In this document: piece by piece, positions 25,344 to 51,599 of the stretch
Numbering within the stretch: the stretch's first letter is position 1
Layout: the number at the start of each line of letters is the position of its first letter
Notes under the pieces: model-generated
Databases searched by the model: none
Told to the model about the DNA's origin: nothing
The model's input: the letters and a program-made list of their open reading frames with translations, nothing else
Source of the DNA: Mobula hypostoma
Lineage: Eukaryota
NCBI RefSeq assembly: GCF_963921235.1
Contig: NC_086109.1
Coordinates: 2,480,001-2,544,000, forward strand
Direction: 5' to 3'
Length of the DNA stretch: 64,000 nt
Position numbers and translations under genes: made by a program

Positions 25344-25499
25344 TTTCATCCCCATGTGAGCGAGAATGATGCAGCTTTATGCAGCTTTTATCATCACCCA
25401 GATACAGAATGACGATCACGAAGGAGATCACGATGAGGATCACGATGAGGATCGCGGTGGCAACCTTCCAACCATTGTCTGATTTTCTGTGATCTGGAT
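25344..25499 (-). CDS. Transmembrane exon of CD2/SLAM-like gene A (candidate)
   Basis: Acceptor ttttatctccccag| and donor |gtaagg; 156 bp, phase 1-1. Encodes (D)PDHRKSDNGW-KVATAILIVILIVISFVIVILYL-GDDKSCIKLHHSRSHGDE. Confidence 0.7.
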
Positions 25500-26397
25500 C
25501 TGGGGAGATAAAAGATTTTGTCATTAATCCCATCCTTACACTCCCAGTGACAAGGAATTGATGGATCCAGTCCATCCCACCACAGGGCAGAGAAAACTCC
25601 CTGTCACTGCAACACCGTGCCCCAGTCCTCTCTAGTCAGCCCCACATCACTCTGCTCCACCACCCCGCTCACCTTGAATATCTTCATCCACTCCAAACAG
25701 CCCCATATCCTCCCTTCTAATTGTAGTCTCCAATGTCTCTGACAGTATCCTCATATGATGTTAGTCCAGCACCCTCACTCAGACCCTCAGTAACCCCTCT
25801 CCCCCAGCACACTCTGACTGACTGACTGCTTCTAGTATGAAATGGTGATACAGCCCTTGCACACTCACAGGACAGGAATTAGACACAGAGGCAAGATCCG
25901 TTTGCACTGACCCATCACCCACTCGCAGAGCCTGAGTTAGTTGCAGGAATCTGCGCTCAGTCGGTATATGCATCTGCTGTGGAGATGGAGGGAGATGATC
26001 TGTCTCCCTCTGACTGATGCTGGTGGGAAAGAGGGGAGGGGGTAGTAGGTGGAGATGACAATGTTCCTTACACTCTATGATTGGTGTCTGTGGAATGAAA
26101 TACTGTTGGTAGAGGCTGGAAGATCACCTGGGTGTGACCCTGAAAGAGTGAGATGGTAAAGTGCACAGCCCAGGTCAGCAGGGCCTCTCTGCATGAAGAA
26201 GATTGATTTTTATATCAGGGGCTTTTGTGAGGCCTCAACAATCCTGGGTGAAGAGGCTACACAAAGTCAAAGACACAGCACAGGAGGGCAGGAACAGATC
26301 CCCCAACCCACACTTCCACTCCCTGCCCCACCATAATTTATCTCTCCTCCGCTGTGCTGTTGTTACTGGGTTGTACTGAGGTTGTATCTCCTAAGGC

Positions 26398-26770
26398 CTG
26401 TGGACCTGATGGTCATTGCATTCTCACCACTGGTGGGACCCATCCACAGTTACCACCGCGGGCCTAATGGTCATCGCATTCTCACCGGTGGTGGGATGTT
26501 TCCACAATTACCACTATGGACCTGGTGGACAGCTCATTCTCTCTGGTGGTGGGACCCTCCCACCATTACCACTGTGGACCTGATGGATGTCTCTCACTGG
26601 TGGTGCTACCATTCCATTGTTAGACCACTGTGTGCCTGCTGGACAATTCATTGTCTCCAGAGGTGGAATATTCCCACAGTTACACCACTGTGGGCCTGGT
26701 GGACAGATCAGTCTTTCTGGTGGTGGGACGTTCCCACAGTTACACCACTGTGGACACAATGGATACCTCG
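26398..26770. repeat. Diverged tandem repeat, 57-60 bp unit, about 6.5 copies
   Basis: The CACTGTGGACCTG(A/G)TGG...TGGTGG(T)GGGA...CCACAGTTAC motif recurs at about 26398, 26457, 26514, 26571, 26628, 26688 and 26748. Confidence 0.75.
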
Positions 26771-26979
26771 CTTTCTCCAGTGAGTGATTATCAGACACCC
26801 AGTAACATTGCAGCTTCATTCATTCATATTGCACAGTCGCTGTTCAAACTGCTATGGAAGAGTGTGGAGAGAAACTATGGTCACACCAACATGAACCTCA
26901 AAGTCTGTTTAAAGGGAATGGTTGAGATTGCTGTCTCTTTTGCAACTGTCACAGCATTGGAAATGTAGGGTTAGACCGA

Positions 26980-29900
26980 GCTCAGCCTGACAATCGAGTG
27001 GATTATGTTGCTTGCCATCAGGAGAACACCTGTAATTAGGACATTGTAGCCATTTGGAAGACATGATTGCAGGAGGGGCAAGACTGGCAGCTCAATATTC
27101 CGGGGTTCCGTTGTTTTAGATGTGACAGAGCGGGAGGGATTAAAGGAGGAGGGCTGGCATTACTAGTCAGAGAGAATATCACCGCAGATTGACAGGAGAA
27201 CACGACTAGTGAGGCGTTACGGCTGGAACTGAGAAAACAAAAAGGAATGACCATGTTAATGGGGCTAAATTACAAACAACCCAATAGTCCACAGGATTTA
27301 GAGGAACAAATTTATAGAGAGCTCGCAGACTGTTGCCAGAAACATAAGGTTGTTATAGTTGGTGATTTTAAACTTTCCACATAATGGCTGGGAATCCCAT
27401 ACTGTAAAAGGACGAGATGGGATAGAGTTGGTTAAATGTATTCAGGAAAGTTTCCTTCGTCAGTGTGTAGAAGTCCCAACGAGAGTTGCTGATGCTTAGT
27501 CTGCTATTAGGAAATGAGACAGGGCAGATGACAGAAGTTGGTGCAGAGGAACTCTTTGTATCTAGTGACGACAATGACATTAGTTTCAAAGTGAATATAC
27601 AAAGAGGTAGTCCAATCACAAACAAGAGAAAATCTGCAGATGCTGGAAATCCAAGCAACACCCACAAAATGCTAGAGGAACTTAGCTGGCCAGGCAGCAT
27701 CTATGGAAAAGAGTACAGCTGACATTTCAGGCCGAGACCCTCAGGGTCGATGGTACTGTTTTCTTTAGGTGCTGCCTGTTCCTCCAGCATTTTGTGTATG
27801 ATACAAAGAGATAGATCTGGTCTGTGAGTTGAGATCCTAAATTAGAGACAGGCCAATTTTAATGGTATCAGAAATGATCTGGCAAGTGTGGTTTGGGACA
27901 GGCTGTTTCTGACAAAGGTGTACTTGGAAAGTAGAAGGCCTTCAAAAATGAAATTTTCAGAATAGAGATTTTATATGCCTGTCAGAATAAAAGGTGCATG
28001 CATGAATTAATAGCATGCATCGGGAACTTTGGTTTACAAGAGATCTTGAGCCCCCGTTTCAGAGATAAAAGGGGGTATATAGCAGGCATAGGCAAGTATG
28101 AACAAATGAGGTGCTCATGAAACACAAGAAATGCAAGGGGAGGCTTTAGAAAGAAATTAGAAAGACTAAAGTAAGGTTTGAAGTTGCTCTCGCAGACAAG
28201 GTGAAGGAGAATCCTAAAGGATTCTACAGGTATGTTAAGAGCAAAAGGATTGCTAGGGACAACATTGGTTTGCTGGAAGACATGAATGGTAGTCCATGTG
28301 TGGAGCCAGAACAGATGGGGAGATGGGAAATGCATTCTTTGCATCTGTATTTACTCAGGGGGTGGATACAGAGTCTACAGAAGTGAGCCATAGTGGCAAC
28401 TTCATGGATCCTCCACAGATTACAGAGCAGGACGTGTTTGCCACCCTGAGACAAATCAGCGTGGATAAATCCACAGCACCTGACAAGGTGTTCCCTCGGA
28501 TCCTGTGGAAGCCAAGTGCAGAAATTTCCAGGGGCCGATCAGAGATATTTAAATCACCCTTAACTATAGGAGTGGTACCAAAGGATTGGAGGATAGCCAA
28601 TGGTGTTTCACTGTTTAAAAAAGGCTCTGAGGGACCAGATATATCAGTAATGGATAGATATGGACTGATTAAGGATAGCCAGCATGGCTTTGTACGTGGT
28701 ATGTCGTGTCTAATTAATCTTGTAAGTTTTTATCGAGGAAGTTACCGGGAAAGTGGATGAAGGCAAGGTAGCAGATGTTGTCTGCATAGATTTTAGAAAG
28801 GCATTTGACAAGATCCGACATGAGTGTCTGGTCAAGAAGGATCTGTTGCTTGGCATTCAGGATGAGAGAGTAAATTGGATTAGACATTGGCTTTGTGGAA
28901 GAAGCCAGAAAGTGGTAGTAGAATGTTCCCTCTCGGACTGGAGGCCTGTAACTAGTGGTGTCAATGCTGGGTCCTTTGTTGTTTGCCATCTGTAGCAATG
29001 ATCTAAATAATCATGTGGATAACTAGATCAGCAAATTTGTGGATGACACAGTTTTGGGGTGTAGTGGACAGTGAGGAAAGATATCATGGATTGCAAAGTG
29101 ATCTGTATCAGCTGGAAAAATGGACCGAAGAATGGCAGATGGAATTTAAGACAGACAAGTACGAGGTTTGGCATTTCAGTAGGACCAACAGCAGGTCTTA
29201 CGCAGTGAATGGTAGGGCACTGAGGACTGTGGTAGAACAAAGGGATCTGGGAATACAGATTCATAATTCATTGAAAATGACATCATAGATGGGGTCATAA
29301 AGAAAGCTTTTGGCACATTGGCCTTCAGAAGATGAGATGTTATGACGAAGTTGTATAAGACATCGGTGAGGCCTAATTTGGAGCATTGAATGGAGTTTGT
29401 CACCTACCTCCAGGAAGGATGTAAACAGGGTTGAAAGAGTGAATAGAATATTTACAAGGCTGTTGCCGGGTCGGGAGGACCTGGGTTATAAGGAAAGATT
29501 GAATAGATCACAACTGTTTTCTTTAGAATGTAGACAATTGGGAGGAGATTTATAAAGGTATACAAAATTATGAGGGTATAATAGGGGCAATACAAAGGCT
29601 TTTTCCACTGACGTTGGGTAGGACTCCCACCAGAGATCATTGGTTAAGGTTGAAAGGTTAGAAGTTTAAGGCAAAAATGAAGGGAAACTTCTTCACTCAG
29701 AGGGTCACGAGATTGCGGAATGAGCTGCCAGTGCAAGTGGTCCATGCAAGCTCGATTTCAATGTTTAAGAGAAAATTGGATAGGTAGGTATATGGATAGC
29801 CGGGATATGGAGGGCAATGATGTCGGTGCAGGTCATTGCGAGTAGGCAATTACAATGGTTTCAGCATGGATTAGATGGACCGAAGGGCCGGTTTCTGTGC

Positions 29901-30170
29901 TGTATTTCTCTTCGACAATGACTCTAAAGGACTCACTGTGGATGAGATATTTCTGTTGGTGGACACACTTGAGGTCTCCAGCAGCTTTCTAATCTGCCAT
30001 CTGACATGGTAAATGCAGGCTCAGTCTTAAGTTTTAAGAATAAGTTGGACAGGTACATGAATGGGAGAGTCTGGAGGGTTATGGACTGGATGCAGGTCAA
30101 TGGGACTAACGGAATAATGTTTCAGCACAGACTAGAAGGGCCGAATGGCCTGTTTTCTGTGCTGTGGTTC
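26980..30170 (+). mobile_element. Degenerate CR1 ORF2 (endonuclease to 3' tail), with a Penelope fold-back at about 27620-27800 and a second CR1 3' end at about 29990-30180
   Basis: ORF pieces 28201-28386, 28296-28760, 28753-28995 (DFRKAFDK) and 29013-29288; CR1 tail motifs. Confidence 0.85.
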
Positions 30171-30779
30171 TAAGGTTCTATTCCCCATGAGCTCCTCTAC
30201 CATCTGCATCTTCAGGGAGGTGCTGCTGGAGATCACCCCATTCCCACTCAATCGTCAGCACAGCAGCCACGTCTCCTCTTTCTACCGCAAGCTGATGTGG
30301 AAGGAGGTTACTGACGGGCAGATCATTGTTTGCTTCCCAGTGACAGATAGCTGTGTGTCCCAGCCCTCAGGCTGCGCTTGGTGCCACTGGGATAGTACTG
30401 TTATGCCTGGCCTCTAACCCACTCCCGAGGCAGTAGGTGTGGATCAGCAGCGGGTAAGGAGGGAGGGGAATTTTTGGGTGGAAGGAAGGTGCAGAGGGTA
30501 ACTGAACACTTCCATTCACATTACCTGGCCACCATCTCCAGTACTGCCCTTTCCCTGGGCCTGACCCTGGGAAGTCCACCTGTTCCAAGGTTGGGGGAGT
30601 CAGGCAGGAGGATGGAGAGTTGGAGGTGGTGACTTCCTGTTTGATAGAGTGTCTGAGCCTCTGTACCCCTCAGGGAAGGAGGAAATACTCTCACTAAGTT
30701 GAAGGGTGGTCTTGAGGTGCAGAGACCATTTGGGGTTGGGGGATGAAGTCGGCTGCTGGGTCCACAGACATGATAGCCA

Positions 30780-31100
30780 ATCCCTTGAACTATGCAGCTC
30801 CTGACTGACCATGCTAAGTTGCTGGAACTGAAGGAGGATATATTCAGGGCCATCCAGGATGCTGAGAGCATCATCGATAACAGTTTCTGTGCAGTAGTCA
30901 CAGGTACACTGCAGATGGGTTGGTGAACACCAGGAAAGGTAGAGAGAGCAGTAACAAGTACTTCCCTTTGGACGCTGCTGCTGGGGGTAGGTGGGGAAAT
31001 GACCTTTCAGGCCACAGCAGCAGCCAGGCGGGTGGCACTGTGACCACTGTGAGGCTCAGTTGGGAAGGGTAAAGTCACACTGAGCAAAAGTGACAGCTTA
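30780..31100 (+). mobile_element. CR1 ORF1 remnant
   Basis: Nucleotide pattern matches the ORF1 region at 21900-22080 and 24100-24230 (CAGCTCCTG..., GTAGTCACA..., GGGGAAATGACC). Confidence 0.55.
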
Positions 31101-31289
31101 TTGTCACCTCAGCACTGTTCCCTCTAAAACTGCACAGGTGCATGGCTGCGCAATAACTGAAATGCTCTCATGCACATAGCCTTTGTTGCCATGCAGCAGG
31201 AATTGGATGCAGCTAGAAAAAGTTTTGAAACTTGAAAGGTTTACTTGTTGTACTGTATTTCATTTTACGCTTCAATTAATAAACAAAAA

Positions 31290-31485: not shown

Positions 31486-32007
31486 TTATGCTGGGTGTGG
31501 GTGTGCTCTTGTATTTGTGTACTTTGCTGAGCTCAGACCGCAGTCCGGGCCATTAGCAAGCAGTGCTCTGAGAAATAGACGGAACTGGGATCCCTGAACG
31601 TGACAGACCACACCTTTGACCTGGAGATACTGTGGGATCTGTTTAACCGTGACCCACAGATATAGACCATTTGGCCCATCCATTACAGTCCCTCCCACCC
31701 CATTGGCTATTGCTCTGTTTTCCACTCCATATGTACTCAGCTCCTCCAGCCTCAGAGTCACGAGGTTCCCCATCAGCAGTTTGATGCTTCACAGCCTCTG
31801 GTCCAGTCTCTGGGGATGTGGTGAGTGTGTCCTCCAGACTCACACTGTCTCAACCCCACTACACTGGGACCGTGAGCCCAGCTCTGGACACGGGCAGACA
31901 GTGGGGCTCAGAAAACAGGGGGAACACACAGGATCTGCCCTCACCCATTAATTAGGGGTGTTTCAGGAACTGGTGAAACCCGGACCTCTTCACGGTATCT
32001 CACTTAC

Positions 32008-32316
32008 CAGCTACCTTCAGTTGCACTTTCCTCTTAGTCCGTGTTCCTGAACTTGTTGTAACAATCACCTCATAAACGTCAGTGTCCTCTTTCTGTAGAT
32101 CATGGATTATTAAACTATAGTCTGCTGGATGACAGCCTATCCGTTGCTTGTACTTTTTAGTATCGAGATATGTCGATTTCCCATTCATGCATTCTGCTAT
32201 CTTGGTTGAGTTTGATAATATTCTCCACACAACATTGGTAATGTTTGCCGCTTCTGGGATCTCAAAAGTTAACCAAGCCACTTCTCCGAGGGCACCTTCC
32301 ACGACGGGAATCTCAT
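32008..32316 (-). CDS. IgV-set exon, CD2/SLAM-family-like (gene A)
   Basis: Acceptor cttgtctcctcag| and donor |gtaagt; 309 bp, phase 1-1, open. Encodes DEIPVVEGALGEVAWLTF...VVWR...YKQRI...LIIHDLQKEDTDVYEV...VQLKVA. It has a V-set pattern (C-strand W, L.I.DL...D...Y) without the B/F-strand cysteines, which is characteristic of CD2/SLAM domain 1. Confidence 0.88.
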
Positions 32317-32424
32317 CTGAGGAGACAAGTGAAAACAGTTATCAGGAGGAGGAATTAATGCTGAGGAATCACAGACACAGGAGCAGCCATTTCAAGTTTC
32401 AGGATTCAAATCCAAGGTTGTTTA

Positions 32425-35190
32425 TGTCACAATGGTGGGGCATTGGGAGCAAGGGTGGACCCAAATGCAAGACACATCTTGTGAGGTTAATTAAATTGAG
32501 TTTATTGTTTGATACCAGGAGAGCAAAGCAGAAGCAGGAATAGCAAACTGGACAAGGACTCAGGACTACGACGAGGCTGGGACGAGGTCTGGGCTTGGAC
32601 TCGGAATTGGATCCCAGAACTAGAGGAGACATGAAGAGGCTAAGGTATGGACTCCGAGCCCGAGACTGGGCAAGGACCCAGTACCTGGGTCTTGCCACGG
32701 GCTCGGACCCCAGAACCAGGCATGGACATGACAGGGGCTAGGGAGAGGAGGAACATGGAAAAACAGAACCTCGGTCTTGGGAGAGCAGGCACATGGAACC
32801 AGGGACACGTACACAGAACACAGAGTCGGGACCTCTCCTTGGGTACAGGACATAGGGCCGGGACTCATGACACCCCCACGGGGCAACTGCAAGACGGCCT
32901 GACTTATCCCACGGAGGTGAGGACAAGATATGACAAGACATGACCCCCTGTGGGGCAACGGCAAGGAGGTCATACTTACCCCATGGAGGCAAGGACAAGA
33001 CAAGACCAACACGAAAGAACACCAGACAGTACCTATCTAGCTCCGGCGATAGAACTGGACTGAAGTGCAGGCGAGGGCTGAAGATGAGGGCGAGAGGCGA
33101 GAGGGACAGAGAAGGGATTCAGACAGCGGGGTAGGACAGGAATCACAGACCGCCAGGGCCAGGACTTGACTCGGAACTTGGATGCCGCCAGGGCCGGGAC
33201 TCGACTCAGAACTTGGATGCCGCCAGGGACAGGAATCGACTCGGTACTTGGATGCCGCTAGGGACGGGACTTGACTTGGAGCCTCTGGGTAGTGGCGAGC
33301 TCTTGACTCGGCCCGGAAACAGTGGACAGCGGTTCTTGATTCCCTCTGGCGGGTTAACTGACGGACCCACCTCGGTGAGGAAACTTTGCAGGCTCGTTTT
33401 GGCAAGGTAACTTGACAGGGTTGCTCCGGTGAGGAAAGGTGAATTACTGGCACTTACTTCGGGCGGAGACTAGGCTTGCTGTGGCCAGGTGACATTGGCA
33501 CGCCGTACCTTTGGCGACTTTGCAAAGGCTCTTGCACCGAACGGCTGAAAGCCGGAGACCATAAACTACCGGTTCAGTCGAGAGTAAATTGCCTCCAATC
33601 ACCAAAGCTGAGAGACACGGGAAAACAGGAAACCAAAGGGCAACAGGGAGTCAACGGTCCGGATCGTAACATAAACAAAGTAAATTTAAAGGGACCCTGA
33701 TCCGGACCATGACAGTATCCTCCCTCCCTCCCCAATGGGAGCTTCCAGGCAACCAACAGATTTGCTGTATTATCGATGACCCGGGTGGGTGGAGGGGTGT
33801 TTGGCCGGCGGCAAAACAGAACAACAACACCTTGACTTTCAGGCTGACAAGAGTTTGGAAAAACAGTGTTTGTGTCTGCTGGGTCCATGTTTGGCGAGAG
33901 CGTTCTGTCACAATGGTGGGGCATTGGGAGCAAGGGTGGACCCAAATGCAAGGCACATCTTGTGAGGTTAATTAAATTGAGTTTATTGTTTGATACCAGG
34001 AGAGCAAAGCAGAAGCAGGAGTAGCGAACCGGACAAGGACTCAGGATTACGACTAGGCTGGGACTAGGGCTCTGGGCCTGGACTCGGAATTGGATCCCAG
34101 AACAAGCGGCAACATGCAGAGGCTAGGGTATGGACTCCGAGCCAGAGACTGGGCAAGGACCCAGTACCTGGGTCTTGCCTCGGGCTCGGACCCCAGAACT
34201 AGGCAAGGACATGAGATGGGCTAGGGAGAGGAGGATCATGGAAAAACAGAGCCTCAGTCTCAGGAGAGCAGGTACATGGAACCATGGACACATACACAGA
34301 ATGCAGAATCAGGACCCCTCCTTGGGTACAGGACATAGGGCCGGGACTCATGAACCCCCATGGGGCAACGCAAGACGGCCTGACTTACCCCACAGAGGCA
34401 AGGACAAGACACAACAAGACATGACCCCCCCCCCCCGTGGGGGAATGGCAAGATGGCCTGACTTACCCCACGGAGGCGAGGAGAAGACATGACCCCCCGC
34501 GGAGCAATGGCAACTCGGCCAGACTTACCCCACGGAGGCGAGGACAAGACAAGACCAACACGAAAGAACACCAGACAGTACCTATCTAGCTCCCGCGATA
34601 GAACTAGACTGAAGTGCAGGCGAGGACTGCAGACGAGGGCTAGAGGTGAGAGGGGCAGAGAAGTGATTCAGACAGTGGGGTAGGGTAGGAATCATGGAAC
34701 GCCAGGGCCGGGACTTGACTCAGAACTTGGATGTACCCAGAGCCAGGACTTGACTTGGAGCCTCTGGGTAGTGGTGAGCTCTCGACTCGGCCCGGAACAG
34801 TGGACAGCGGTTCTTGATTCCCTCCGGCGGGTTAACTGACAGACCCACCTCGGTGAGGAAACTTTGCAGGCTCGCTTTGGCGAGCTAACTTGACAGGGTT
34901 GCGCTGGTGAGGAAAGGCGAATTACCAGCACTCGCTTCGGGCGGAGACTAGGTTTGCTCCAGCCAGATGACATTGGCACGCTGTACCTTGGTGACTTTGC
35001 AAACGCTCCCAGACTGAACGGCTGAAAGCGGAAACTATAAACTACCGGTTCAGTCGAGAGTAAATTGTCTCCAATCACCAAAGCCGAGGGACACGGGAAA
35101 ACAGGGAACCAAAGGGAAACAGGGAGTCAATAGTCCAGATCGTAACATAAACAAAGTAAATTTAAAGGGACCCCGATCCGGACCATGACA
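32425..35190 (-). mobile_element. Non-autonomous LTR retrotransposon (Gypsy-like): two LTRs of about 1.29 kb (33906-35190, 32425-33714) and a 191-bp interior
   Basis: Both LTRs run TGTCA...TGACA. 5-bp TSD GTTTA at 32420-32424 and 35191-35195. Minus-strand PPT GGGAGGGAGGATAC at 33715-33728. After the 5' LTR: GAACGCTCTCGCCAAAC-ATG GAC CCA GCA GAC (MDPAD, gag-start-like). Confidence 0.9.
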
Positions 35191-36899
35191 GTTTATTGTC
35201 ACACTTCAGTACACAAGTGTAACGGAGAACAAAATAATTGTTACTGGATCCGAGGTAGCATAAAAAAAACATGAAGCATAAACAAAACAATAAATATAGA
35301 CACGAGACAGGCAGCGGATGCTGGAAATCCAAAGCAAAACACAAAATGCTGGAGGAACTCAGCAGGTCAGGCAGCATCAATGGAAATGAATAAACGGTAG
35401 ACATTTTGGGCCGAAATCCTACATAAGAGTAGCTGATGTACATAAACTGATTGCATGTTCATAAAGTGACAATAGCTAGTGGAATATCTGTACATTATGT
35501 TACTCTGACAGGAAGTTACAACATAATGGTGGTGGGTTTATCGGTGGACGTGTAGATTAGCCTGATGGTTTGAGGGGAGTCTGCTGGCACATTCTCTGGG
35601 TCCCAGCCCAGTGAGAGAGCTGGGCCACAGTGAGCCCACACAGGGAAGAGTGAAGACTTCTTGCACCCGGTCCTGAGGAAGGAAGTTGCAACTTGCAGCC
35701 AGATATCAATAGAGGGGGCAGAGCTGGGGGTGGTGGGGCACAGACACGACAAATTGGACCCCGTCCAGGGATGCGGTGGGGGTACTGTTTGGGGAAGGTG
35801 GGATGAATGGGAGAGTGTAAGCGGTGTGGAGGGACAAAGGGAACTTGCCCACAGATCTTTGAATGAGGAATGACAAGAGGGTGAGGCAATCTGTATCTCT
35901 GCATTTGTTGATCAGGATCCCAGATCTGTGAACGGGGATAATGAATGTCTGGGTGGGGATGGTCAGAGCTGAGGCAGGACAAGAGAGCTCTGTGGATGGA
36001 ACAGGGCTGGGGAAGGTTGATGGAGGGGTCATGGCAGAATGAGAGAACAGAGGCTGAGGTCAGATTTAATAGGGTGGTGAAACGATGAGGGTCCCTGACT
36101 AAACAGAAAGGATCTCTGTCTCTGGGCAGAGAAGACGATACCAAGAGCCGCAGAAAGTACTAGACCGAACGGTGAGAGGGAAGTGGGGAGTGTACTCCAG
36201 GGAAAACATTGTCATGTGTTGGGAGGGGTGGTGGAGGCCATGATGGTCTTCACACAGATCAAACCCTGCATGAATAGGACCAGTCACTCTCTCACTGAAT
36301 GGGAGAGAGAGAGAGGTGTGAATAGGTGAAATGAGCTGGACTGATACAGCATGAAGTTAGCAGGAATTGACAGGCTGAAGAGCCACATTTGCTGAAATCT
36401 TCTGGTGATTCAGTAATTTCAGAACTGGTTCACAATGGGCCACATGACCTTCCTCAGTTTCATGAGTTCCCAACATCTGTGGGCCCATCATTATGGGTTC
36501 CCACGCCAGGGAGACCCGGGTTTATATACAGTCTATAATGTCCCAACACACACCTCTAGGACAGGGAAGGCTAGGGTTACATTCAGAGTCAAACCCATCT
36601 ACAATGTCTCAACAGAGACCTCTAGGACAGGGCAGGCTGAAACACTCCACTTTCAGACCCTGCAGGGTTATCTTCACACTGGGCATCCTCCCAGACTGGT
36701 GGTGTGGTGCATCTACCAGAGACACTGTCCCTCGGGAAGACTCCCAGCAATAAATATCAGCTGTCCTGCTCTGTTGTACTGAACTGGGACGGTCACCTTC
36801 ATTCAGAGTGTTCCTCCACCAGCAGTGAGAGACTTTCTGGCTCCATGGATGGGTGGATGGATGAAGCAGTGGATTGGATGAGACTCATAGCTGAAGCCT

Positions 36900-37660
36900 C
36901 TGGCTGTTCTGTCACAACGGGTGTTGAGGGGGCTCATCAATGAGGGTCATTCAGACCAGATTGCCACCCATGGCCAGAACTATTCATCAGACCAAGGCTC
37001 AGAAGTTGTTCTTGAGATCTGGCCTCTCTGTGACATTTCTCCAGGAGCAGAGGTATTTCTTTTGCAGGCTGCTCCTGCAAACTCTTCAGTTTTTCACACT
37101 GGACATGTTGTGCCAGTCCGTTCTGGTGTCTGGAGTGGAGGTGTTTATGTAGGAGTCCTCCCCCTTTCCACTGGGGCCTGGAGAAGAGAATGTTGTGAGA
37201 CAGGTTCCCAAGTCAATTAATGGGCTCCCCAGCCACCTCTCATTTCTGCAGCCTTGAGGAGAGAGTGTATCATGTATATATGGAGTGTGAGAGGCTGTAG
37301 GACTACTGAACCATCTGAAGGCGCTGTACCTCAAGTTCAGCTGCACCTCAGCCCTACCCTTGTGACCTTTGGTCACCCAATGCGAAGGCAGGTGAGTCAC
37401 TTGGGAATTCTCCAGATCGATCTGCTCTTGGGCCTGGCCAAGGTGACCATTTTCGGATCCAAGTGGTGGCCACTTGAGGGTTTTCCCTGAGCCAAATGCC
37501 CTTCTTCTGGAGTTGTGTCCATACCCGCGTGTCCCAGGAGAAGGAGCACATGGGCTCTCTAGAGGGCAATGTGTTAACTTCAATTATGTACATATTGCAA
37601 TGCGAGTGTGTATGTTAATATGAAAATCATATTTATAAAGAAATACTCAGCTGAATTTAC
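36900..37660 (+). mobile_element. Degenerate L1/Tx1-clade ORF2 C-terminus
   Basis: ESVYHVYMECERL and FGHPMRR...DLLLGLAKVTI resemble the Tx1/L1 terminal zinc-knuckle region; an A-rich end follows. Confidence 0.6.
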
Positions 37661-37759
37661 AATTGGAAAGATGTGGGCTGCCGCCAGTCAATGTGTGGGA
37701 CAATGGAAAAGAGGGGGAGGTGGGGAGGGCCCAGACTGTCATCAGCCTCAGTGGAGGGA

Positions 37760-38123
37760 GTGAGCACACAGAGAGCAGTTTATTCTTGCACAAAAGGAAA
37801 AGCTTTCCTTCTGTTATATAATGTCAGTCTGGCAGAGCAATGTTGAGGGAGTTTGGAGAGGATGACAAATCCGTGGGGTGGGGTTATAAATGCACTGATT
37901 TTGTTTAACCCCAGTGAACTTCCTCCACGCCCCCAGGTGAATGGCCCACATCTCCCAGGGCTGTGTGGGAAGAAAGGTTGATTACAGTCTTGTGTGGACA
38001 GCTCCCAGATGACTGGGGTGAAGAAACCTCCCCCAGACCAAGAGCCAGCAAAGGACAGCAAGAGTCAACCCAGTGAGGAGGAAAATTTGTTGTCTGTCTA
38101 CCTCAGCCTGGAATTCCTAGTTC
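37760..38123 (-). CDS. Candidate terminal exon of gene B (short coding part plus 3' UTR)
   Basis: Acceptor ctctttttcag| (AG at 38124-38125). The phase-1 frame gives GTRNSRLR-stop (TAG at 38098-38100). A hydrophobic stretch IFLLTGLTLAVLCWLLVW lies in another frame. AATAAA at 37780-37785. Confidence 0.5.
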
Positions 38124-38443: not shown

Positions 38444-38710
38444 CAGATTTGTTCTTTCCACAGATGTCTCCCAGCCAGACCTCTGCCATTTCGTTACTGA
38501 CGGGGTTCCGGGCCTCACACTCATACAGGACTTCTTTATCCCCTTTCGCCTCTCCATGCCGCTGGAGGTGATAGTGGCTGCCAGTTCCCACAACTTCTCC
38601 TCCCCTCCACCACCTGAAGGTGGAGTTGCCTGAATCTTCAGAGCAGATCAAGGTGATATTGCAAGTCTTGGCGATGTACTGAACCATGATGACTGTACCT
38701 GACACAGGAC
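38444..38710 (-). CDS. IgC2-set exon, CD2/SLAM-family-like (gene B)
   Basis: Acceptor ctttttctgtctcgacctcag| and donor |gtgaat; 267 bp, phase 1-1, open. Encodes GPVSGTVIMVQYIAKTCNITLICS...FRWWRGG...YECEARNPVSNE...DIC. The four cysteines and the Y.C.A.NPVS motif are typical of CD2/SLAM domain 2. Confidence 0.88.
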
Positions 38711-39587: not shown

Positions 39588-41690
39588 GAACATCACCGAT
39601 AGACAGTCCTGGTCAAACTCAATAAAGGTTCAAAGCTTCATATGATTGTCAAAGTATGTGTTTACAAAACAACTCTGAACATCACCTATAGACAATAGAC
39701 AATAGGTGCAGGAGTAGGCTATTCGGCCCTTCGAGTCATTCACTGTGATCATCCACAATCAGTACCCTGTTCCTGCCTTCTCCCCATATCCCTTGACTCT
39801 GCTATCTTTAGGAGCTCTATCTAACTCTTTCTTGAAAGAATCCGGAGAATTGGCTTCCACTACCTTCTTGGGCAGAGCATTCCACAGATCCACAACCCTG
39901 TGTGTGAAAAAGTTTTCCTCAACTCTGTTCTAAATGGCCTACCCCTTGGTCTTAAACTGTGGCAGCTGGTTCTGGACTCACCCAACATCAGGAACATGTT
40001 TCCTGCCTCTAGCGTGTCCAATCCCTTAATAATCTTATATGTTTCAATCAGCTCTAATTTTGCTCACTAACCTCCTATGTGGGACCTTATCAAAGGCTTT
40101 CTGAAAGTCCAGGTACACTACATCCATTTTCATAGTTACATCCTCAAAAAATTCCACAAGATTAGTCAAGCATGATTTCTTTTCGTAAATCCATGCTGAC
40201 TCGAACCTATCCTGCTACTGCTATCAAAATATGCCGCCATTTCATCTTTCATAATTGATTTGAGCCTCTTCCCCACCACTGATGTCAGACAGGTCTATAA
40301 TTGCCTGTTTTCTCTCTCCCTCCTTTCTTAAAAAGTGGGATAACATTAGCTACCCTCCAATCCACAGGAACTGATCCTGGAAATATAGAACATTGGAAAA
40401 TGATTACCAATGCATCCACAATTTCTAAAGCCACCTCCTTAAGTACCCTGGGATGCAGACCATCAGGCCCTGGGGATTTATCACCCTTCAGTCCCATCAG
40501 TTTACTCAACACCATTTTTCAGCCTAATGTGAATTTCCTTCAGTTCCTCCGTTACCCTAGGTCCTCTGGCCACTATTACATCTGGGAGTGTTTGTGTCTT
40601 CCCTAGTGAAGACAGATCCAAATTACCTGTTCAGCTCGTCTGCCATTTCCTTGTTCCCCATAATAATTTCACCCGTTTCTGTCTTCAAGGGCCCAACTTC
40701 AGTCTTAACTAATTTTTTTCCTCTTGACACACCTAAAGTAGTTTTTACTATCCTCCTTTATATTCTTGGCTAGCTTATCTCCATACTTCATCTTCCCCAC
40801 CCCCACCCCCGTATTGCCTTTCTAATTATCTTTTGTTGCTCCTTAAAAGTCTCCCAATCCTCTGGCTTCCCGCTCATCTTTGCTATGTTATACTTCCTCT
40901 CTTTTACTTTTATGCTGTCCTTGACTTCCCTTGTCATCCACGGTCACCCCTTACTCCCTTTAGAATCTTTCTTCCTCTTTGGAATGAACTGATCCTGCAC
41001 CTTCTGTATTATTCCCAGAAATACCTGCCATTGTTGTTCCACTGTCATCCCTGCTAGGTTATCTTTCCAGTCAACTTTGGACAGCTCCTCCCTCATGAGT
41101 CCATAGTCCCCTTTGTTCAACTGTAATACTGACACTTCCGATTTTCCCTTCTCCCTCTCAAATTGTAGATTAAAACTTATCATATATATTATGGTCACTA
41201 TCTCCTAATTGCTCCTTTACCTCGAGTTCCCTTATCAAATCAGGCTCATGACACAACACTAAATCCAGAATTGCCTTCTCCCTGGTAGGCTCTAATACAA
41301 GCTGCTCTAAGAATCCATCTCTGAGGCTCTCCAGAAACTCCCTTTCTTGGGGTCCAGTACCAGCCTGATTTTCCCAGTCTACCCGCATGTTGAAATCCCC
41401 CATAACAACCGTAGTATTACCTTTGCGACACGCCAATTTTAACTCTTGATTTAACTTGCACCCTATATCCAGGCTACTGTTTGGGAGCCTGTAGATAACT
41501 CCCATTAGGGTCTTTTTGCCCTTATGACAGTCCTAGTCAAACTCAATAAAAGTTCAAAGTTTCATATGATTGCCTAAGTATGTGTGCACAATACAACTCT
41601 GAACATCACTGATAGACAGTCCTGGATAAACTCAATAAAGTTTCAAACCTTCATATGATTGTTAAAGCATGTATGTACAATACAACTCTG
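39588..41690. repeat. 89-bp tandem repeat (about 3 copies) split by a CR1 insertion
   Basis: Unit GACAGTCCT(G/A)G..AAACTCAATAAA..TTCAAA..TTCATATGATTG...ACAACTCTGAACATCAC starts at 39602, 41526 and 41615. Confidence 0.8.
39691..41525 (-). mobile_element. CR1 with internal deletions (endonuclease, partial RT, 3' tail)
   Basis: ORFs 41170-41505 (GVIYRLPNS...GDFN...LDLVL...SDH), 40944-41198 and 40285-40515; (CTATTGT)n tail at about 39690. Confidence 0.88.
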
Positions 41691-42154
41691 GTATTTGTCT
41701 ACTTCAGATAGCCACTAACTACAGAAAGAAATGGTGTTGATGAATGAAAAGCCATCAACTCTTCCCTCGACATAAAAAAAAGAAACAAAAGTCACAGTCC
41801 CCAAAATCCCCCCTTTCCCACAGCAAAAATAAGTGACAATAACCATCCCCAACACCGCTCACTCACAGAAAAGACCAGTGCCAATAACAGTCCCCGATCC
41901 TCTCACTTACAAAAATTAACTGCAACAATAACGGTCCCTGGCCCCCTCACTCGCAGAAAAGAACAGCACTTCAACACACTAAAAACCAATGGCATGTCCC
42001 CTTTTATAGATGCACCATAGAAAGCATTATGGATGCATCACACTTGTTATGGCAACTGTTTTTTATGTGACCGCAAGAAACTGCAGAAAGTTGTGAACAC
42101 AACTAAGTATATCATGGAAACCAACCTCCTATCCATGTATCCTTGTCCACAATT

Positions 42155-43594
42155 TGTCATAAGGGGGAGCTGGGAGCAGACCCAAATGCAAGATACACAC
42201 ACTGAAGTATTAGGAACAGGACAAGGTGTGTCAAGAAAGCAAGGGATGTGGAGAAGAAACGACGCTGGACAAGACACAGGTCCTGGATGAGACTGGGATA
42301 CAGGGCCTGGGCTAGGACTAGACTAGGAAAGTGGGACCTGGATGAGGAACTAGGAACTTTGAACCTGGACAAGGACTCCAAGCCAGAGACTGGACAGGGA
42401 CCCGGAACCTAGGTCTTGACTCGGGTTCGGACTCCAGATCCAGGCGAGGACTAGACGTGGAAAGGCAACAGGACTGGGCGTGGTGGCAGGACTTGGGACT
42501 CCTGGGCAGGACGTGGAATCTCCAGCACTGGGCTGGGCAAAGCACAAGGACAGGAAGAGAACACAAAGCCGAGCCATGGTCGAGGGAGACAGGAACGCAG
42601 AGCCTTGGTCTTGGCAGAACAGGAACACAGAGCCTAGGATGTGGGGGACTGAAACACAGGGACATGGAACACAGAGCCAAGATCCCTCCTTGGGAACAGG
42701 ACTTGGGGCTGGGGCTCAACACAGAGTCAGGACCCCTCTTAGGGAGCAGGATGTAAGGGCGGGTCTTGTACACAGAACACAGAGAGACAGTTCCAAACAC
42801 AAGGTAGCGGAAAATGGCCAGACCTACCTAGCAAAGGCATGGACACAGAGACAGCTCTCATCACAAGGTAGTGGAAAACAGCCAGACCTACCTAACAAAG
42901 GCGTGGACACAGAGACGGTCCCCAACACAACATAGCGGCAAACAGCCAGATCTACCTGGTGAAGGCATGGACACAGAGATGGTCCTCAACACAAGGTAGC
43001 AGCAAACAGCCGGACCTACCTAGCAAAGGCATGGACACAGAGACAGCTCTCATCACAAGGTAGTGGAAAACAGCCAGACCTACCTAACAAAGGCGTGGAC
43101 ACAGAGACGGTCCCCAACACAACATAGCGGCAAACAGCCAGATCTACCTGGTGAAGGCATGGACACAGAGATGGTCCTCAACACAAGGCAGCAGCAAACA
43201 GCCGGACCTACCTAGCAAAGGCATGGAAACAGAGACAGTTCCAAACAACAATAGACAGTTCCTTATCTAGACACAGCAAGGCTCCGGTCTTGCTCCAGTG
43301 GTAGAACTTGACAGCGATACAGGTGAGGACGCAGACAAGGTTGCAGGCAAGTCTTCAGGCCAAGGTTTCAGGTGAGGGTTGCGGACAAGGCTTCAGGCAA
43401 GGGCTTAAGAAGGAAAGGGACAGTCCAGCAACTCAAGCTGAAACCAGGAGCTACTTACGTAGCAGCCCAACATGAGAATCATGAGCCTCAATTGAGGCAC
43501 CCCAACAGAACATGGGAAAACCGGAAAATCTGGAATGAGGTCAATGGACCGGACCGTGAACCGGAACACGGACTTCACGGACCGGACCATGACA
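42155..43594 (-). mobile_element. Solo LTR related to the 32425-35190 LTRs, with an internal 64-bp tandem array
   Basis: TGTCAT...GGACCATGACA termini. TSD CAATT/CCATT (4 of 5 match). Shares ACCCAAATGCAAGA and CCAGAGACTGG motifs with the other LTRs. 64-bp units at about 42780-43240 with a 192-bp higher-order duplication (42841, 43033). Confidence 0.8.
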
Positions 43595-43644
43595 CCATTC
43601 ACTTACAACATAGAAAAGACACCATCCCAGAGTTTAGAATAGTC

Positions 43645-44650
43645 ATAAAGTAACAGAAAATTACAGCACAGTAACAGATCTTTGGTCCACCTGCTCCATG
43701 CCAAAATCATTTAAACTGTCTGCTCCAATCGACCAGCGCCGGGAGCATAGCTCTCCATACAGTACCATCCACGTACCTGTCCAAACTTCTCTTAACTGTT
43801 GAAATTGAGCTTGCACTTCTGGTGACAGCTCATTTCATATTCTCATGACCCTCTGTGAAGAATTTTTCCCTCATGTTCCCTCTAAACTTTTCACCTTTCA
43901 CCCTTAACCTATGACCTCTGATTGTAGTCCTACCCAACTGCAGTGAAAAAAAGCCTGTTTGCATTTACTCTATTTATACCCTCATAATTTTGTATACCTC
44001 AATCAAGTGTCCCCTCAGTCTTTTACATTCCAAGGAATAATGTCCTAACCTATTCAATCTTTCCTTATAACTCACGTCTTCCAGACCCGGCAACAACCTT
44101 CTAAATTTTCTCTGCACTCTTTCAACCTTATTTACATCTTTCCTGTAGGCAGCTGACCAACACCGCACATAATATTCCAAAGTAGGCCTCATCAACATTT
44201 TATGCAACTTCAACTAACATGCCAACTCCTGTACTCAATACTTTGATTTATGAAGGCTAATGTTCCAAAATTCTTCTTTACGACCCTATCTACCTCTGAC
44301 ACCACTTCCGATGAATTATAGACCTGTATTCCTAGATCTCTTCGTTCTACCACACTCCTCAGTGGCATACCATTCACAGTGTAAGATCTACCCTGGTTGG
44401 TTCTATCAAAGAAAAACACGTCACACTTATCGGCATTAAATTCCATGTGCCATTTTTCAGTCCATTTTCAGCTGGTCCAGACCCTGCTGCAAGATCTGAT
44501 GGTCTTCCTTGCTGTCTACTATATCCCTAATCTTGATGTCATCTGCAAATTTGCTGACCCAGTTAGCCACATTATGGTCCAGGTCGTTGACCTAGATGGC
44601 AAACAACAATGGACCAAGCACAAATCCCTGCAGCATTCACCTTGTCACAG
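43645..44650 (-). mobile_element. 5'-truncated CR1 3' kilobase
   Basis: ORFs 44210-44446 (MEFNADKC) and 43974-44213 (RPTLEY..RCWS), plus a CR1 tail. Confidence 0.85.
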
Positions 44651-46618
44651 ACATCCAGTCAGAGAGGCAGCAATAGCTGAATAATTCAGGCAAAACAATC
44701 TATGACCTCTGACATCCTCTGGGAGAACAGGGAAAGGCAGAGCTACGGAATATCAGCAGCCGTCTGGATGATGTAGATGGAGCAGCCAGCAGGATCTATG
44801 AATGGAGCTGATCAAGCCATTGAAAACATTGGAGTCTCACTGTCAGTAATTGTATTGTTAAGTGTCGACTCTGTTTCTCCATGATACTAAATAAACTCCC
44901 TGTCTTCATTACAGAGCTTGGGTCCATGCTCTTCAGGTCAGAATTAATTGGGAGTTCTTGGTGAGACTATTTTGGTGTCCTCTCTCTCACTGAAGTTGTT
45001 ACAGATGAAGAGGGGTGAATGCCCTTAGTTGGTAAAGTTACCAAGTGACAGCAATGATCATGGAGACTGGGAGCAGGTGTGAAATAGTCAAGGACAGGAC
45101 CTGCCTGGAGTGAATCAACAGTTGGGGGAGCTACGAGGATGCGCCACCTCGTGGGGTAGAGGGTGGAATCTAGAGTGAGGACACAGCATCAGAATAAGTG
45201 TCTGCCCATTTCACACAGAGACGAGGAGTTGTGGGTGTGGGGAACAGGCAGGAAAGTGGACCCGAGGCTGCCAAACCAACCCTGACAGTACTAGGCTTGG
45301 GGGCGGATTGGCCTACTCCCCCTATTTCTCATTTTCTAATGTTATCCCTCCAATGGGAACCATTTAACCCTGGGATGGAAGAGAGAACATTTCTCAGCCA
45401 AACTTCAGATGGATGTTGCTGGGTGAGATTATTTTCAATGGTTCATTGGTTCAATTTAATATCAGAGAATGTATACAGTATCCAACCTGAAATTCTCACA
45501 CTTCACAGACATCCACGAAACAGAGGAAAACCCCAAAGAATGACTGACAGAAAAATGTTGGAACCACAAAGTCCCCCCACCCGCCTCTCATGCACAAGTG
45601 GCAGCAAAGCATGATCCTTCCCCACTTCCCGTTTCACCCACATTCCAGCAGGAAGCATCAGCCCCACACCACCTTCAGGCAAGCGATAGCAAACCCCCAA
45701 AGAGACCATGATCGAGGTCCATCAAAAACTATAGTCCACAAACCAGCACTTCAACATGCCACAGGGAGAGAGAGGTGTCGTCCCTTCCACAGCGAGAGAG
45801 GAGACCAACAAACAGATCACTGTTTCGATATTGCAGTCTGTAGTCTACTTTGAATGTAATGTTATTGCTAGAGTGAGTCAGGAACCATATTGATGTGTGT
45901 GAGTGTGCTGTTGTGTCCGTGTACCGTGTCACTCACTAGGACACTATATTCAGTGTAATGAGTACACAGGGTATCACTCAGCACAGCACAGCATGAAGGC
46001 TGAGGAATAAACACTTTGCTGAGCTCAGTCTGGGCAATTAACAAGCAATGCCCTGGGAAACTGATGGGATAACTTGAATCCCTGAACATGACAGACCAGA
46101 TCTTTAACTGGGGATACAGTGACCCACAGACAACTCACCCCCTTTACAGACCCTCCCACCTTATGGGTCCATTGTTCAGCTCAGGTTCCCATGGGTCAAG
46201 CAGAGAAACATCAATGGAAAGAGGCCATTCAGCCCAACTCAACAATCTCTGTGCTGTTCTAAGCTAGTCCCATTTGCCTCCAGACCTTTCATCCATGAAC
46301 CTGGCCAAATGCTGTTTAAACACTCACCCTGTAACCACATCTTCCATAGTCCACCCGAGTGCTGATCTCCTCTGGACTCAGAGTAATGAGAGTCATCATT
46401 ACTTCTTCTCGGGCTCTGACTCAGTCTCAGGGGATGTGGTAAATGTGTTCCCCAGACTGTCTCAATCCCACTACACTGGGACCATGAGCCCAGCTCTGGA
46501 CACGGGCAGTCACTGGGGTTCAGTAAACAGGGAAGCACACAGGATCTGCCCTCACCCATTAATTGGGGGTGTTTCAGGAACCGAAGAAACCCGAGCCCCT
46601 CCGCGGTGTCTCACTCAC

Positions 46619-46939
46619 CGTACACCTCCAGTCGCATTTTGTTCTGAGTCTGTGCTCCTGTACTTGCTGTAACAGACACCTCATAAACATCAGAGTCACT
46701 TTTCTGTAGATCACGGATTTCCAGACCGAAGTTCCCGGGATGAAGAGTTATCCGTCGCTTGTACTCCTCAGATCCGTAATAGTCACTGATCTTGTTTGAA
46801 TATGACACTATCTTCGCTCTGGGTGAGAACCGTCTCCACACAAGCTGAGCAATGTCTTCTCCGACTGGGATCCCAGGAAGTAAGGAGACCGAGCGTCCCA
46901 GAGCTCCGTTCACAGTGGTAGAGGAATCCCCAGTCCCAG
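46619..46939 (-). CDS. IgV-set exon, CD2/SLAM-family-like (gene B)
   Basis: Acceptor tcctcttgtctcctcag| and donor |gtgagt; 321 bp, phase 1-1, open. Encodes xGTGDSSTTVNGALGRSVSL...LVWR...YKRRI...LEIRDLQKSDSDVYEV...MRLEVY, with no cysteines. It aligns without gaps to the gene A exon (about 45/103 identical by hand count). Confidence 0.9.
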
Positions 46940-51570: not shown

Positions 51571-51599
51571 AAGGTCAATCACTGCCTTTCTCACTGTTC

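Follow-up and report, generated by a model that had tools for sequence, protein, structure and literature searches.

The segment between positions 25344 and 46939 of the 64,000-nt stretch of DNA analysed here (hereafter the window) very likely belongs to one gene of the lesser devil ray Mobula hypostoma, LOC134355367, of which it comprises exons 2-5, and the product of this gene can with good confidence be placed in the CD2/SLAM family as a type I membrane glycoprotein. All five exons located in the window match the RefSeq protein XP_062921217.1 (LOC134355367) at 100% identity; this 390-aa sequence, named "uncharacterized protein" in RefSeq, joins two V-set domains (V1 and V2), a C2-set domain, a transmembrane (TM) segment and a tail in one chain, in the order V1-C2-V2-TM-tail. 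An earlier reading, made from the sequence alone, had described tandem genes of this family hidden among retroelements in a cartilaginous fish. The animal is indeed a cartilaginous fish and LINE fragments do lie in the introns (Table 1), but "hidden" is overstated for a gene that is modelled, although unnamed, in RefSeq. The outcome is a correction to one transcribed gene, for which RefSeq has an unnamed model and which can now carry the label of a SLAM/CD2-family member.

Exons and domains

The V1, C2, V2 and TM exons are open, their lengths are multiples of 3, and each is bounded by an AG acceptor and a GT donor. Splice sites and reading frame bear out the four phase 1-1 exons (two V, one C2, one TM) that had been proposed on the minus strand, and the outer limits of that proposal, 25344 and 46939, are exact exon ends. 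The V1 exon is identical (100%) to residues 20-125 of XP_062921217.1, and the donor of the TM exon (GAA A/GTAAGG at 25344) agrees with that of the model. The last coding exon was located by an exact peptide match at 20103-20162, preceded by an AG acceptor, and its tail peptide is also present in the paralogue P0132. A distal donor, used by relatives after the peptide KGKKSGTxD, is missing in LOC134355367, in which an upstream donor is used instead.

The leader peptide of XP_062921217.1 was not found in the window (all frames, mismatches allowed). The range of LOC134355367 on record is 51,657 nt and, counting from the stop near 20100, the first exon lies ~7-8 kb past position 64000. An ATG-started ORF at 51028-51678 was considered as a leader and rejected, as it shows no signal-peptide character; it runs into a minisatellite (47635-51571) that contributes nothing to the RefSeq protein. 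Six-frame searches of the whole window with family HMMs and with tblastn revealed neither a further C2 exon nor a third V exon, nor any relic; weak V-like matches at 20847-21003 were lost in the HMM scan.

The Pfam V-set profile (cut-off 26 bits) recognized both V1 (31.1 bits) and V2 (26.9 bits) above the threshold. V1 has no cysteines at all, V2 has two at non-canonical positions and none at the B and F positions, and the canonical B-F disulfide is absent from both domains, while the C2 domain exhibits four cysteines and the motif Y-E-C-E-A-R-N-P-V-S. The single transmembrane helix is devoid of charged residues, and the cytoplasmic tail (DDKSCIKLHHSRSHGDESQGEGQALKNHEKKAATNASE, ~38 residues) is devoid of tyrosine and hence of an ITSM. 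From the N-terminus onwards, the predicted protein would comprise a signal peptide, the V1 domain without disulfide, a four-Cys C2 domain, the strongly diverged V2 domain adjoining the membrane, a TM helix and the tail.

Table 1. Features of LOC134355367 and its introns, in positions of the window
Feature	Position (strand)	Details
Exon 2, V1, N-terminal V-set domain	46619..46939 (-)	321 nt, phase 1-1
Exon 3, C2-set domain	38444..38710 (-)	267 nt, phase 1-1; four cysteines, YxCxAxNPVS
Exon 4, V2, second, membrane-proximal V-set domain	32008..32316 (-)	309 nt, phase 1-1
Exon 5, stalk, transmembrane helix and start of cytoplasmic tail	25344..25499 (-)	156 nt, phase 1-1
Last coding exon, ..S QGEGQALKNHEKKAATNASE	20100..20164 (-)	Stop TAG 20100-20102; fifth in window, sixth of gene
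Intron 1, 3' part	46940..64000 (-)	Leader exon past window end
39-bp minisatellite, inside intron 1	47635..51571 (.)	~101 copies; Tandem Repeats Finder
LINE endonuclease-RT fragment, V1-C2 intron	41170..41505 (-)	Pfam Exo_endo_phos_2, 37.7 bits
Reverse-transcriptase fragment, V2-TM intron	28753..28995 (+)	Pfam RVT_1, E 5e-5, below cut-off
Minor cryptic exon	36797..37178 (-)	Spliced to V2 acceptor in one RNA run

The second V exon in rays

The two V exons share a tract (46359-46765, minus strand, versus 31733-32154; 77% identity over 422 nt, E 2e-89) that encompasses the 3' third of the V exon and ~260 nt of the intron. Of the two pairs of duplicated intron segments pointed out by the sequence-only reading, the first is borne out by this tract and the second only by a 63-nt match (47112-47174 versus 35647-35709, 90%). 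Identity amounts to 85-88% over the initial 200 bases of the intron versus 56-74% for the exon; for the 5' two thirds of the V exons dS is 0.79, compared with 0.15 for the 3' third and an intron divergence of 0.15. Judging from these comparisons, the tract is a probable product of gene conversion between both V exons. The V-C2-V layout would most likely have arisen by duplication of a V exon, with the conversion probably coming later than the duplication. Any order of the exons stays in frame, because every domain exon is of phase 1-1. A related copy of the reverse-transcriptase fragment listed in Table 1 was observed at 44024-44620.

The V-C2-V-TM layout is also found in M. birostris, Hypanus sabinus and Hemitrygon akajei. 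The third domains of LOC134355367 and of its stingray and manta orthologues form one clade (SH-aLRT 100, branch 1.1), and V2 identity across Mobula, Hypanus and Hemitrygon (65-81%) is about the same as that of V1. The retention of both the layout and the V2 clade in these genera, together with open exons with consensus splice sites and spliced RNA in at least four runs, makes it improbable that LOC134355367 is a transcribed but decaying or functionless young paralogue, in which the additional V domain and the tail would undergo drift. Decay would agree with the overall dN/dS of ~1 between V1 and V2, which fits relaxed or diversifying evolution of V2, with the replacement of the missing distal donor by the upstream one, with the substitution of one conserved V2 cysteine by Tyr, and with the comparison to a neighbouring paralogue, from which V2 differs by 12%, as against 99-100% identity for V1 and C2.

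Relationship to CD2 and SLAM proteins

Members of the CD2/SLAM family are characterized by an N-terminal V domain without the B-F disulfide and a C2 domain with two disulfides, arranged in an ectodomain of the V-C2 or (V-C2)x2 type. The V-C2-V ectodomain of LOC134355367 departs from both arrangements in its architecture, not in the type of its domains. The V-C2 profile, built from 73 sequences, matched SLAMF6 end to end in one stretch (5-198 to 4-193; 127.1 bits), with the NPVS-type motif aligned and the four C2 cysteines corresponding one to one. Single-domain searches reported CD48, CD2, SLAMF6 and SLAMF5 as the best relatives of solved structure for both V1 and V2, and CD48 as the top sequence match (V1: 2.4e-6; V2: 1e-4). 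The Pfam Receptor_2B4 profile scored 22.7 bits on the whole protein (cut-off 21), and distant library matches were named CD48-like, SLAMF9 and SLAM. A single-sequence AlphaFold model of V1 (pLDDT 42.8) was discarded as unusable. The two-domain AF2 model built on an alignment (pLDDT 88.7) identified CD2, NTB-A, CD48 and CD58 at ranks 1-7 in the PDB, and CD2/SLAM members exclusively at ranks 1-17 among Swiss-Prot models. Sequence, profile and predicted fold agree in supporting the CD2/SLAM assignment, which had been proposed from the combination of a V domain without the B-F disulfide and a four-Cys C2 domain.

In proteins of the CEACAM family, the N domain is succeeded by A/B C2 domains that have one disulfide each, and CEACAM1 and CEA resemble LOC134355367 in that a disulfide-less N domain precedes C2-type domains. 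That the ray protein belongs to a different IgSF family of this kind, e.g. CEACAM or HEPACAM, is nonetheless very unlikely. CEA does reach the highest summed profile score (169 bits over several repeats), with a similar sum for CEACAM1, a few relatives carry the RefSeq names CEACAM5-like, HEPACAM2-like or NCAM2-like, and CEACAM1 and HEPACAM occur lower down the fold lists. Counted per V-C2 unit, however, the 127 bits of SLAMF6 contrast with 66-70 bits for the N-A1 units of CEA and CEACAM1 (CEACAM1: 70.1 bits). CEACAM A domains have two cysteines, the first and the fourth of the four C2 positions being without cysteine in the profile alignment, whereas the C2 domains of LOC134355367 and SLAMF6 have four. 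The best fold matches all belong to CD2/SLAM, with CEACAM placed below every member of that family; TxYxxV/I motifs are present in paralogues of LOC134355367; and the RefSeq names of ray and shark relatives are mostly of the "SLAMF5/8/9-like", "Ly-9-like" or "CD48-like" kind.

Among the CD2/SLAM members, human and mouse SLAMF6 (NTB-A) and SLAMF5 (CD84) share with LOC134355367 the disulfide-less V domain followed by a four-Cys C2 domain, as well as the rule of one phase-1 exon per domain, and show TM-scores of 0.75-0.81 with the AF2 model. The ray protein differs from them by the additional V-type domain that follows C2 on the membrane side and by a tail without tyrosine or ITSM. A short or absent signalling tail is shared with the ITSM-less members CD48, CD58, SLAMF8 and SLAMF9; CD48 and one form of CD58 are, however, GPI-anchored proteins of two domains, whereas LOC134355367 has a TM helix and three domains. 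The four-domain Ly-9 (SLAMF3), of the (V-C2)x2 type, provides another case of a multi-domain ectodomain generated by internal duplication, but LOC134355367 has neither a second C2 exon nor its relic between V2 and TM, and its second V domain is of a long-branch, ray-specific type.

Transcript joins and predicted role

Evidence of splicing came from contigs of same-species runs; their RNA label is inferred, although the joins between exons demonstrate that they contain spliced RNA. In run X5, the loose end at 32317 carries the final 29 bases of C2 (C2-V2 join) and the loose end at 32008 carries the initial 30 bases of TM (V2-TM join). Contigs limited to the V2 exon were found in four RNA runs; they end exactly at 32008 (records 32008-32211) and reach 32307, close to the opposite end of the exon. 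For the V1 exon, RNA contigs contain 0.49 of the words of a 601-nt stretch that is 53% exon, roughly what the exon alone would contribute. The V1-C2 and TM-last-exon junctions are predicted from the RefSeq model, the exon phases and the orthologues. The join of the cryptic exon to V2 (36797 to 32316) has GT..AG ends on the minus strand and a depth of 5.4 versus 83 for V2, and this exon has no in-frame ATG or signal peptide, with stops upstream.

Since C2 is joined to V2 and V2 to TM in the RNA contigs, we conclude that there is one V-C2-V-TM gene and not two. The presence of two tandem CD2/SLAM-like genes between 25344 and 46939 (V1-C2 and V2-TM), as first read from the sequence, is extremely improbable and largely refuted: the duplication of the V exon with its downstream intron, a layout without a second C2 exon and hence unlike a canonical single CD2/SLAM gene, and the minor transcript from 36797-37178 would favour it, but the RefSeq model and three orthologues also unite V-C2-V-TM in one protein, the minor upstream exon provides neither a start codon nor a signal peptide in frame, and searches of the window found no TM or GPI exon after C2 and no leader before V2. 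The tandem paralogues lie outside the window (LOC134355361-66), clustered with LOC134355367 on the same 98-Mb chromosome, so that the proposed lineage-specific expanded cluster is seen at a larger scale (LOC134355361-67). Within the window there are no flanking marker genes that would relate it to the conserved SLAM/CD2 gene cluster or, as in elasmobranchs, to the MHC-linked slamf block (PMC10751288); clustering with LOC134355361-66 is the linkage observed.

CD48, CD58 and SLAMF members bind family members across cell-cell contacts, and in the CD2/SLAM family binding to self or to other members involves the GFCC'C'' face of the V domain. Strict SLAM receptors (SLAMF1, 3-7) possess a cytoplasmic ITSM (TxYxxV/I), which recruits SAP or EAT-2. 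Because its tail has no ITSM, the product of LOC134355367 probably serves as a ligand or in adhesion, in the manner of CD48, SLAMF8 or SLAMF9, rather than as a SAP-recruiting receptor. By analogy, its N-terminal V domain would most likely bind a further protein of this expanded family at contacts between cells, and the third domain would lengthen the ectodomain by one Ig unit. Several V-C2 paralogues carry ITSM-type motifs (TVYANI, TEYAAV, TVYATV) and are probable candidates for the signalling side.

We also modelled a self-complex of V1-C2, which scored 0.43 versus 0.22 for the best control, with at least 82% contact agreement between runs and a partner pLDDT of at least 85. The score thus reaches the mark, as did 21/30 solved homodimers and 0/23 solved single chains, and on eukaryotes 17/29 and 0/30, respectively. 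The modelled interface lies off the V face, at the A strand of C2 (residues 113-121 and 182-184). As this contact corresponds to edge-strand pairing of C2 domains, we do not count it for V-V binding; the model gave no support for head-to-head V-V pairing of the SLAM type, and the dimer of SLAMF6, which uses the V face, was not reproduced.

In mammals, SLAM/CD2 receptors tune the contacts of lymphocytes and NK cells. The history of the family before bony vertebrates is almost undescribed in the searchable literature: our search revealed no dedicated study of SLAM/CD2 in cartilaginous fish or teleosts, and the one mention it yielded was of 'slamf' in a figure legend concerning the white-shark MHC (PMC10751288).

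A ray relative (P0004) exhibits a V-C2-V-C2-TM layout. As a tentative broader reading, possible rather than probable, stingrays and devil rays may possess a distinct, undescribed SLAM/CD2 branch, in which V-C2 is followed by a rapidly evolved V domain near the membrane, distinguished by a particular cysteine pattern, and in which no signalling motif is left in the tail. This branch may be part of a ray-wide radiation by exon shuffling (V-V-V, V-V-C2, V-C2-V, V-C2-V-C2, up to four V domains). If so, the radiation would yield ligands of varied length for the ITSM-bearing V-C2 receptors of the same cluster; to our knowledge, such ligand-receptor diversification is not seen in tetrapod SLAM loci. 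LOC134355367 itself is a modest architectural variant of a known family, no surprise but of use for annotation and a lead for comparative immunology. The locus points to bona fide SLAM/CD2 family members in rays, among which duplication of phase-1 exons would have produced layouts unknown in mammals, such as V-C2-V with a signalling-dead tail.

Gene structure and transcripts of LOC134355367

An exhaustive HMMER search with the V1 exon as a query retrieved ray proteins having two or three V-type stretches. P0122 (XP_062921217.1, annotated in RefSeq as "uncharacterized protein LOC134355367" of M. hypostoma, 390 aa) is identical to the window across the V1, C2, V2 and transmembrane (TM) exons, whose outermost ends coincide exactly with the limits (25344 and 46939) set by the sequence-only reading. 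Past the TM exon P0122 continues as ..S-QGEGQALKNHEKKAATNASE, and this peptide is encoded exactly by the last exon. The leader peptide of P0122, MAFGWFLISLWLTLSISE, was sought in the window and is absent from it. The gene range recorded for LOC134355367 (51.7 kb), counted from the stop near 20100, puts exon 1 ~7-8 kb beyond the window end, and the minisatellite therefore lies within intron 1. Several frames of the minisatellite are open on both strands because its unit has no stop codons, and it is absent from the RefSeq protein. An ATG ORF that enters it shows no signal-peptide character and was rejected as a leader.

Features of the LOC134355367 region, in window positions
Feature	Position	Strand	Remarks
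V1 exon (V-set)	46619-46939	minus	AG acceptor, GT donor, length divisible by 3, phase 1-1
C2 exon	38444-38710	minus	AG acceptor, GT donor, length divisible by 3, phase 1-1
V2 exon (V-set)	32008-32316	minus	AG acceptor, GT donor, length divisible by 3, phase 1-1
Stalk/TM exon	25344-25499	minus	AG acceptor, GT donor, length divisible by 3, phase 1-1
SKGKKSGTSDD codons	25312-25343	minus	just beyond the donor used by P0122
Last-exon peptide	20103-20162	minus	AG acceptor before, TAG after
Match to C-terminus of P0002	20033-20122	minus	last exon of P0122 gene, other reading frame
Minisatellite	47635-51571		3.9 kb, 39-bp units, about 101 copies
ATG ORF	51028-51678		enters minisatellite
Cryptic exon	36797-37178	minus	~6% of V2 depth
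Retroelement copy	44024-44620		V1-C2 intron
Retroelement copy	28965-29532		V2-TM intron
RNA-run pile-up	35160-35560		core 35300-35420
Unspliced contig of run X5	36289-37940		contig of 2.2 kb that covers this stretch
Juxtamembrane-like segment	15791-15910	minus	E about 1e-3

Both V exons exceed the Pfam V-set gathering score and have 44-45% of residues in common. V1 contains no cysteines and V2 contains two, located on the C' and D strands and not on B and F, and the C2 domain has four, along with a YECEARNPVS motif. Family HMMs (from 161 V and 78 C2 domains), run on the complete six-frame translation of the 64-kb window, found V1, C2 and V2 as the only Ig exons, hence there is no second C2 exon or recognisable relic of one in this stretch. 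LINE fragments are present within the introns. One retroelement piece occurs in two copies, inverted relative to each other (73% over 600 nt). A segment at 15791-15910 weakly resembles the juxtamembrane cytoplasmic segment of family members (..KRDMRGSWDRRSGKK..). Its surroundings contain no V, C2 or TM exon, and the segment could be either a remnant of a paralogue since lost or a chance resemblance.

In the relatives the TM exon continues through ..KGKKSGTxD before the last exon, and the SKGKKSGTSDD codons, part of the exon in paralogues and stingray orthologues, are still encoded in the window. The relatives' distal phase-1 GT donor is however missing there, with GAT GAT AGG in its place, and the P0122 model uses an upstream donor (GAA A/GTAAGG at 25344), as does M. 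birostris. Thus, with the distal donor absent, the gene moved to the upstream one and acquired a shorter tail.

Since the P0122 gene model is a prediction, RNA evidence was sought in M. hypostoma sequencing runs (RNA status guessed by the tool), four of which were placed on 31960-37940, a stretch spanning nearly the entire C2-V2 intron. The M. hypostoma runs contain 0.49 of the words around V1, where the exon makes up 53% of the stretch, and 0.41-0.46 around V2 (exon 50%), in both cases roughly the portion that is exon. In all four, one contig stops precisely at the V2 donor (32008-32211) and a second reaches 32307, nine bases before the V2 acceptor. In run X5 the sequence continues past 32317 into the reverse complement of the final 29 bases of the C2 exon (..GGGAGACATCTGTGGAAAGAACAAATCT), and past 32008 into that of the initial 30 bases of the TM exon (ATCCAGATCACAGAAAATCAGACAATGGTT). 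These loose ends are the C2-V2 and V2-TM splice junctions and make V2 an internal exon in the transcript that carries C2 and TM. The joins of V1 to C2 and of TM to the last exon rest on the RefSeq model, the exon phases and the orthologues. The two tandem genes initially proposed within this span are replaced, on the strength of these junctions and the P0122 model, by a single gene. The sole other joint to the V2 acceptor comes from the cryptic exon at 36797 (one run, depth 5 vs 83), which contains stop codons and no in-frame ATG or signal peptide, and over nearly the whole C2-V2 intron the runs lend no support to V2 having its own promoter and leader. Run X5 also has an unspliced contig in this intron, and all four runs pile up at 35160-35560 (summed depth 20,000-30,000); the core of this pile-up belongs to a dispersed repeat, of which the window has nine or more partial copies and which is probably SINE-like and strongly transcribed.

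Assignment to the CD2/SLAM family

Searched alone, V1 matched CD48 best (2.4e-6), followed by CD2, SLAMF6 and SLAMF5; V2 also had CD48 at the top, with SLAMF5, SLAMF6, CD58 and CD2 among its matches, and C2 gave weak results (CEA, 1.4e-4; SLAMF6, 0.19). A profile of 73 V-C2 units aligned with SLAMF6 in one stretch (127.1 bits, positions 5-198 to residues 4-193), with the four C2 cysteines and the C-x-A-x-N-x-V-S pattern all in register. A placement among CEACAMs, named with the sequence-only reading as its refutation, is not borne out. The higher total scores of CEACAM1 and CEA arise because their repeats are summed; their single N-A1 units score only 70.1 and 66.2 bits, respectively, and lack the first and fourth C2 cysteines, whereas SLAMF6 and the profile have all four. 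At the level of sequence comparison, the V-C2 profile settles the assignment to CD2/SLAM. The AlphaFold model of V1-C2 (pLDDT 88.7) has human CD2, NTB-A, CD48, rat CD2 and CD58 among its seven top PDB matches, which are confined to these proteins (TM 0.68-0.76), with CEACAM1b next; its 17 top Swiss-Prot models are all CD2, CD48, 2B4, Ly-9 or SLAMF5-9, with HEPACAM and CEACAM21 behind them. Pfam Receptor_2B4 is above the cut-off over the whole P0122 protein. The SLAM signalling motif, ITSM, has the form TxYxxV/I, and by sequence the tails of V-C2 paralogues from the same and related species have it (TVYANI, TEYAAV, TVYATV, TIYANV). The family identity originally proposed is thus upheld by the SLAMF6 profile score, the fold matches and the paralogue tails.

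Relatives and history of the V exons

The P0122 search reported 66 relatives, exclusively from rays, skates and sawfish, while the domain search further reached the sharks Heptranchias and Stegostoma, a "signaling lymphocytic activation.." protein of the chimaera Callorhinchus, turtle CD48-like and teleost SLAMF9. Automatic RefSeq names of the relatives are mostly SLAMF5/7/8/9-like, Ly-9-like or CD48-like, with a few obvious misnomers (CEACAM5-like, HEPACAM2-like, NCAM2-like, unc-89-like). LOC134355361, -63, -64, -65, -66 and -67 are all on one 98-Mb M. hypostoma chromosome, so the "expanded cluster" suggested earlier is right at a scale larger than the window. The neighbouring paralogue P0002 (LOC134355366) matches the last exon of the P0122 gene with its C-terminal 30 residues (93%) and lacks a TM exon in its RefSeq model, which represents a secreted isoform or else a wrongly joined prediction.

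According to domain annotation, the retrieved proteins include V-C2 (n=50), V-V-V (n=22) and V-C2-V (n=13) layouts as well as V-V-C2, V-V-C2-V, V-C2-V-C2 and longer V chains, a variety made possible by the 1-1 phase of each domain exon. V-C2-V-TM proteins similar to P0122 over the full length are found in three other species: M. birostris (P0128, 79%), Hypanus sabinus (P0129, 63%) and Hemitrygon akajei (P0131, 60%). When 72 V domains were placed in a tree, five V-C2-V-TM proteins had their third domains united in a single clade (SH-aLRT 100), whose branch is very long (1.1 changes per site). The first domains of these proteins group with ordinary N-terminal V domains, and sawfish V-C2-V proteins fall outside the clade. 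This phylogeny argues that devil rays and stingrays share by orthology the layout in which a diverged V lies next to the membrane, and the shared clade contradicts its origin in an assembly or annotation accident. All five third domains keep the AEC cysteine; their other cysteine varies in position, P0122 having Tyr where four relatives have Cys.

The introns downstream of V1 and V2 are 85-88% alike over 200 nt, the exons 56-74%. Synonymous divergence between V1 and V2 drops from 0.79 over the 5' two thirds of the exon to 0.15 over the remaining 3' third, a value that also holds for the intron. These values are most simply read as an old duplication of the exon and, at a later time, a conversion tract of ~350 nt over the exon-intron border. 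Overall dN/dS is about 1; dN in the converted part is 0.33 and so above its dS, with small numbers. Between the tandem paralogues P0122 and P0002, V1 and C2 are 99-100% identical, V2 only 88%.

Possible function and novelty

P0122 is predicted to have a signal peptide. Its ectodomain consists of three Ig domains and carries five N-x-S/T sites; the TM helix is uncharged, and the ~38-residue tail has no tyrosine. CD2/SLAM members bind via the N-terminal V domain, and those without an ITSM (CD48, CD58, SLAMF8/9) are ligands or adhesion partners. By this analogy we propose, giving it about an even chance, that P0122 serves as a counter-structure for the ITSM-bearing V-C2 receptors of its own cluster or as a homophilic adhesion molecule, in which the third Ig domain would add one Ig unit of reach. 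The self-complex model of V1-C2 (0.43 vs 0.22 for the best control; contact agreement at least 82%, partner pLDDT at least 85) attained a mark that 21 of 30 solved homodimers reach, but none of 23 solved single chains (17/29 and 0/30 among eukaryotes). Its contacts involve the C2 A strands (113-121, 182-184) and not the V faces, so the model gives no support to SLAM-type pairing and is at most a lead for a side-by-side dimer.

RefSeq already includes the P0122 gene without naming it, and has given its relatives SLAM-type names automatically. In the searchable literature we found no study of the SLAM/CD2 family in cartilaginous fish besides a passing "slamf" label in a white-shark MHC figure (PMC10751288). 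With its V-C2-V arrangement, in which the proximal V has diverged and the tail lacks motifs, the protein adds a modest architectural novelty to a known family.
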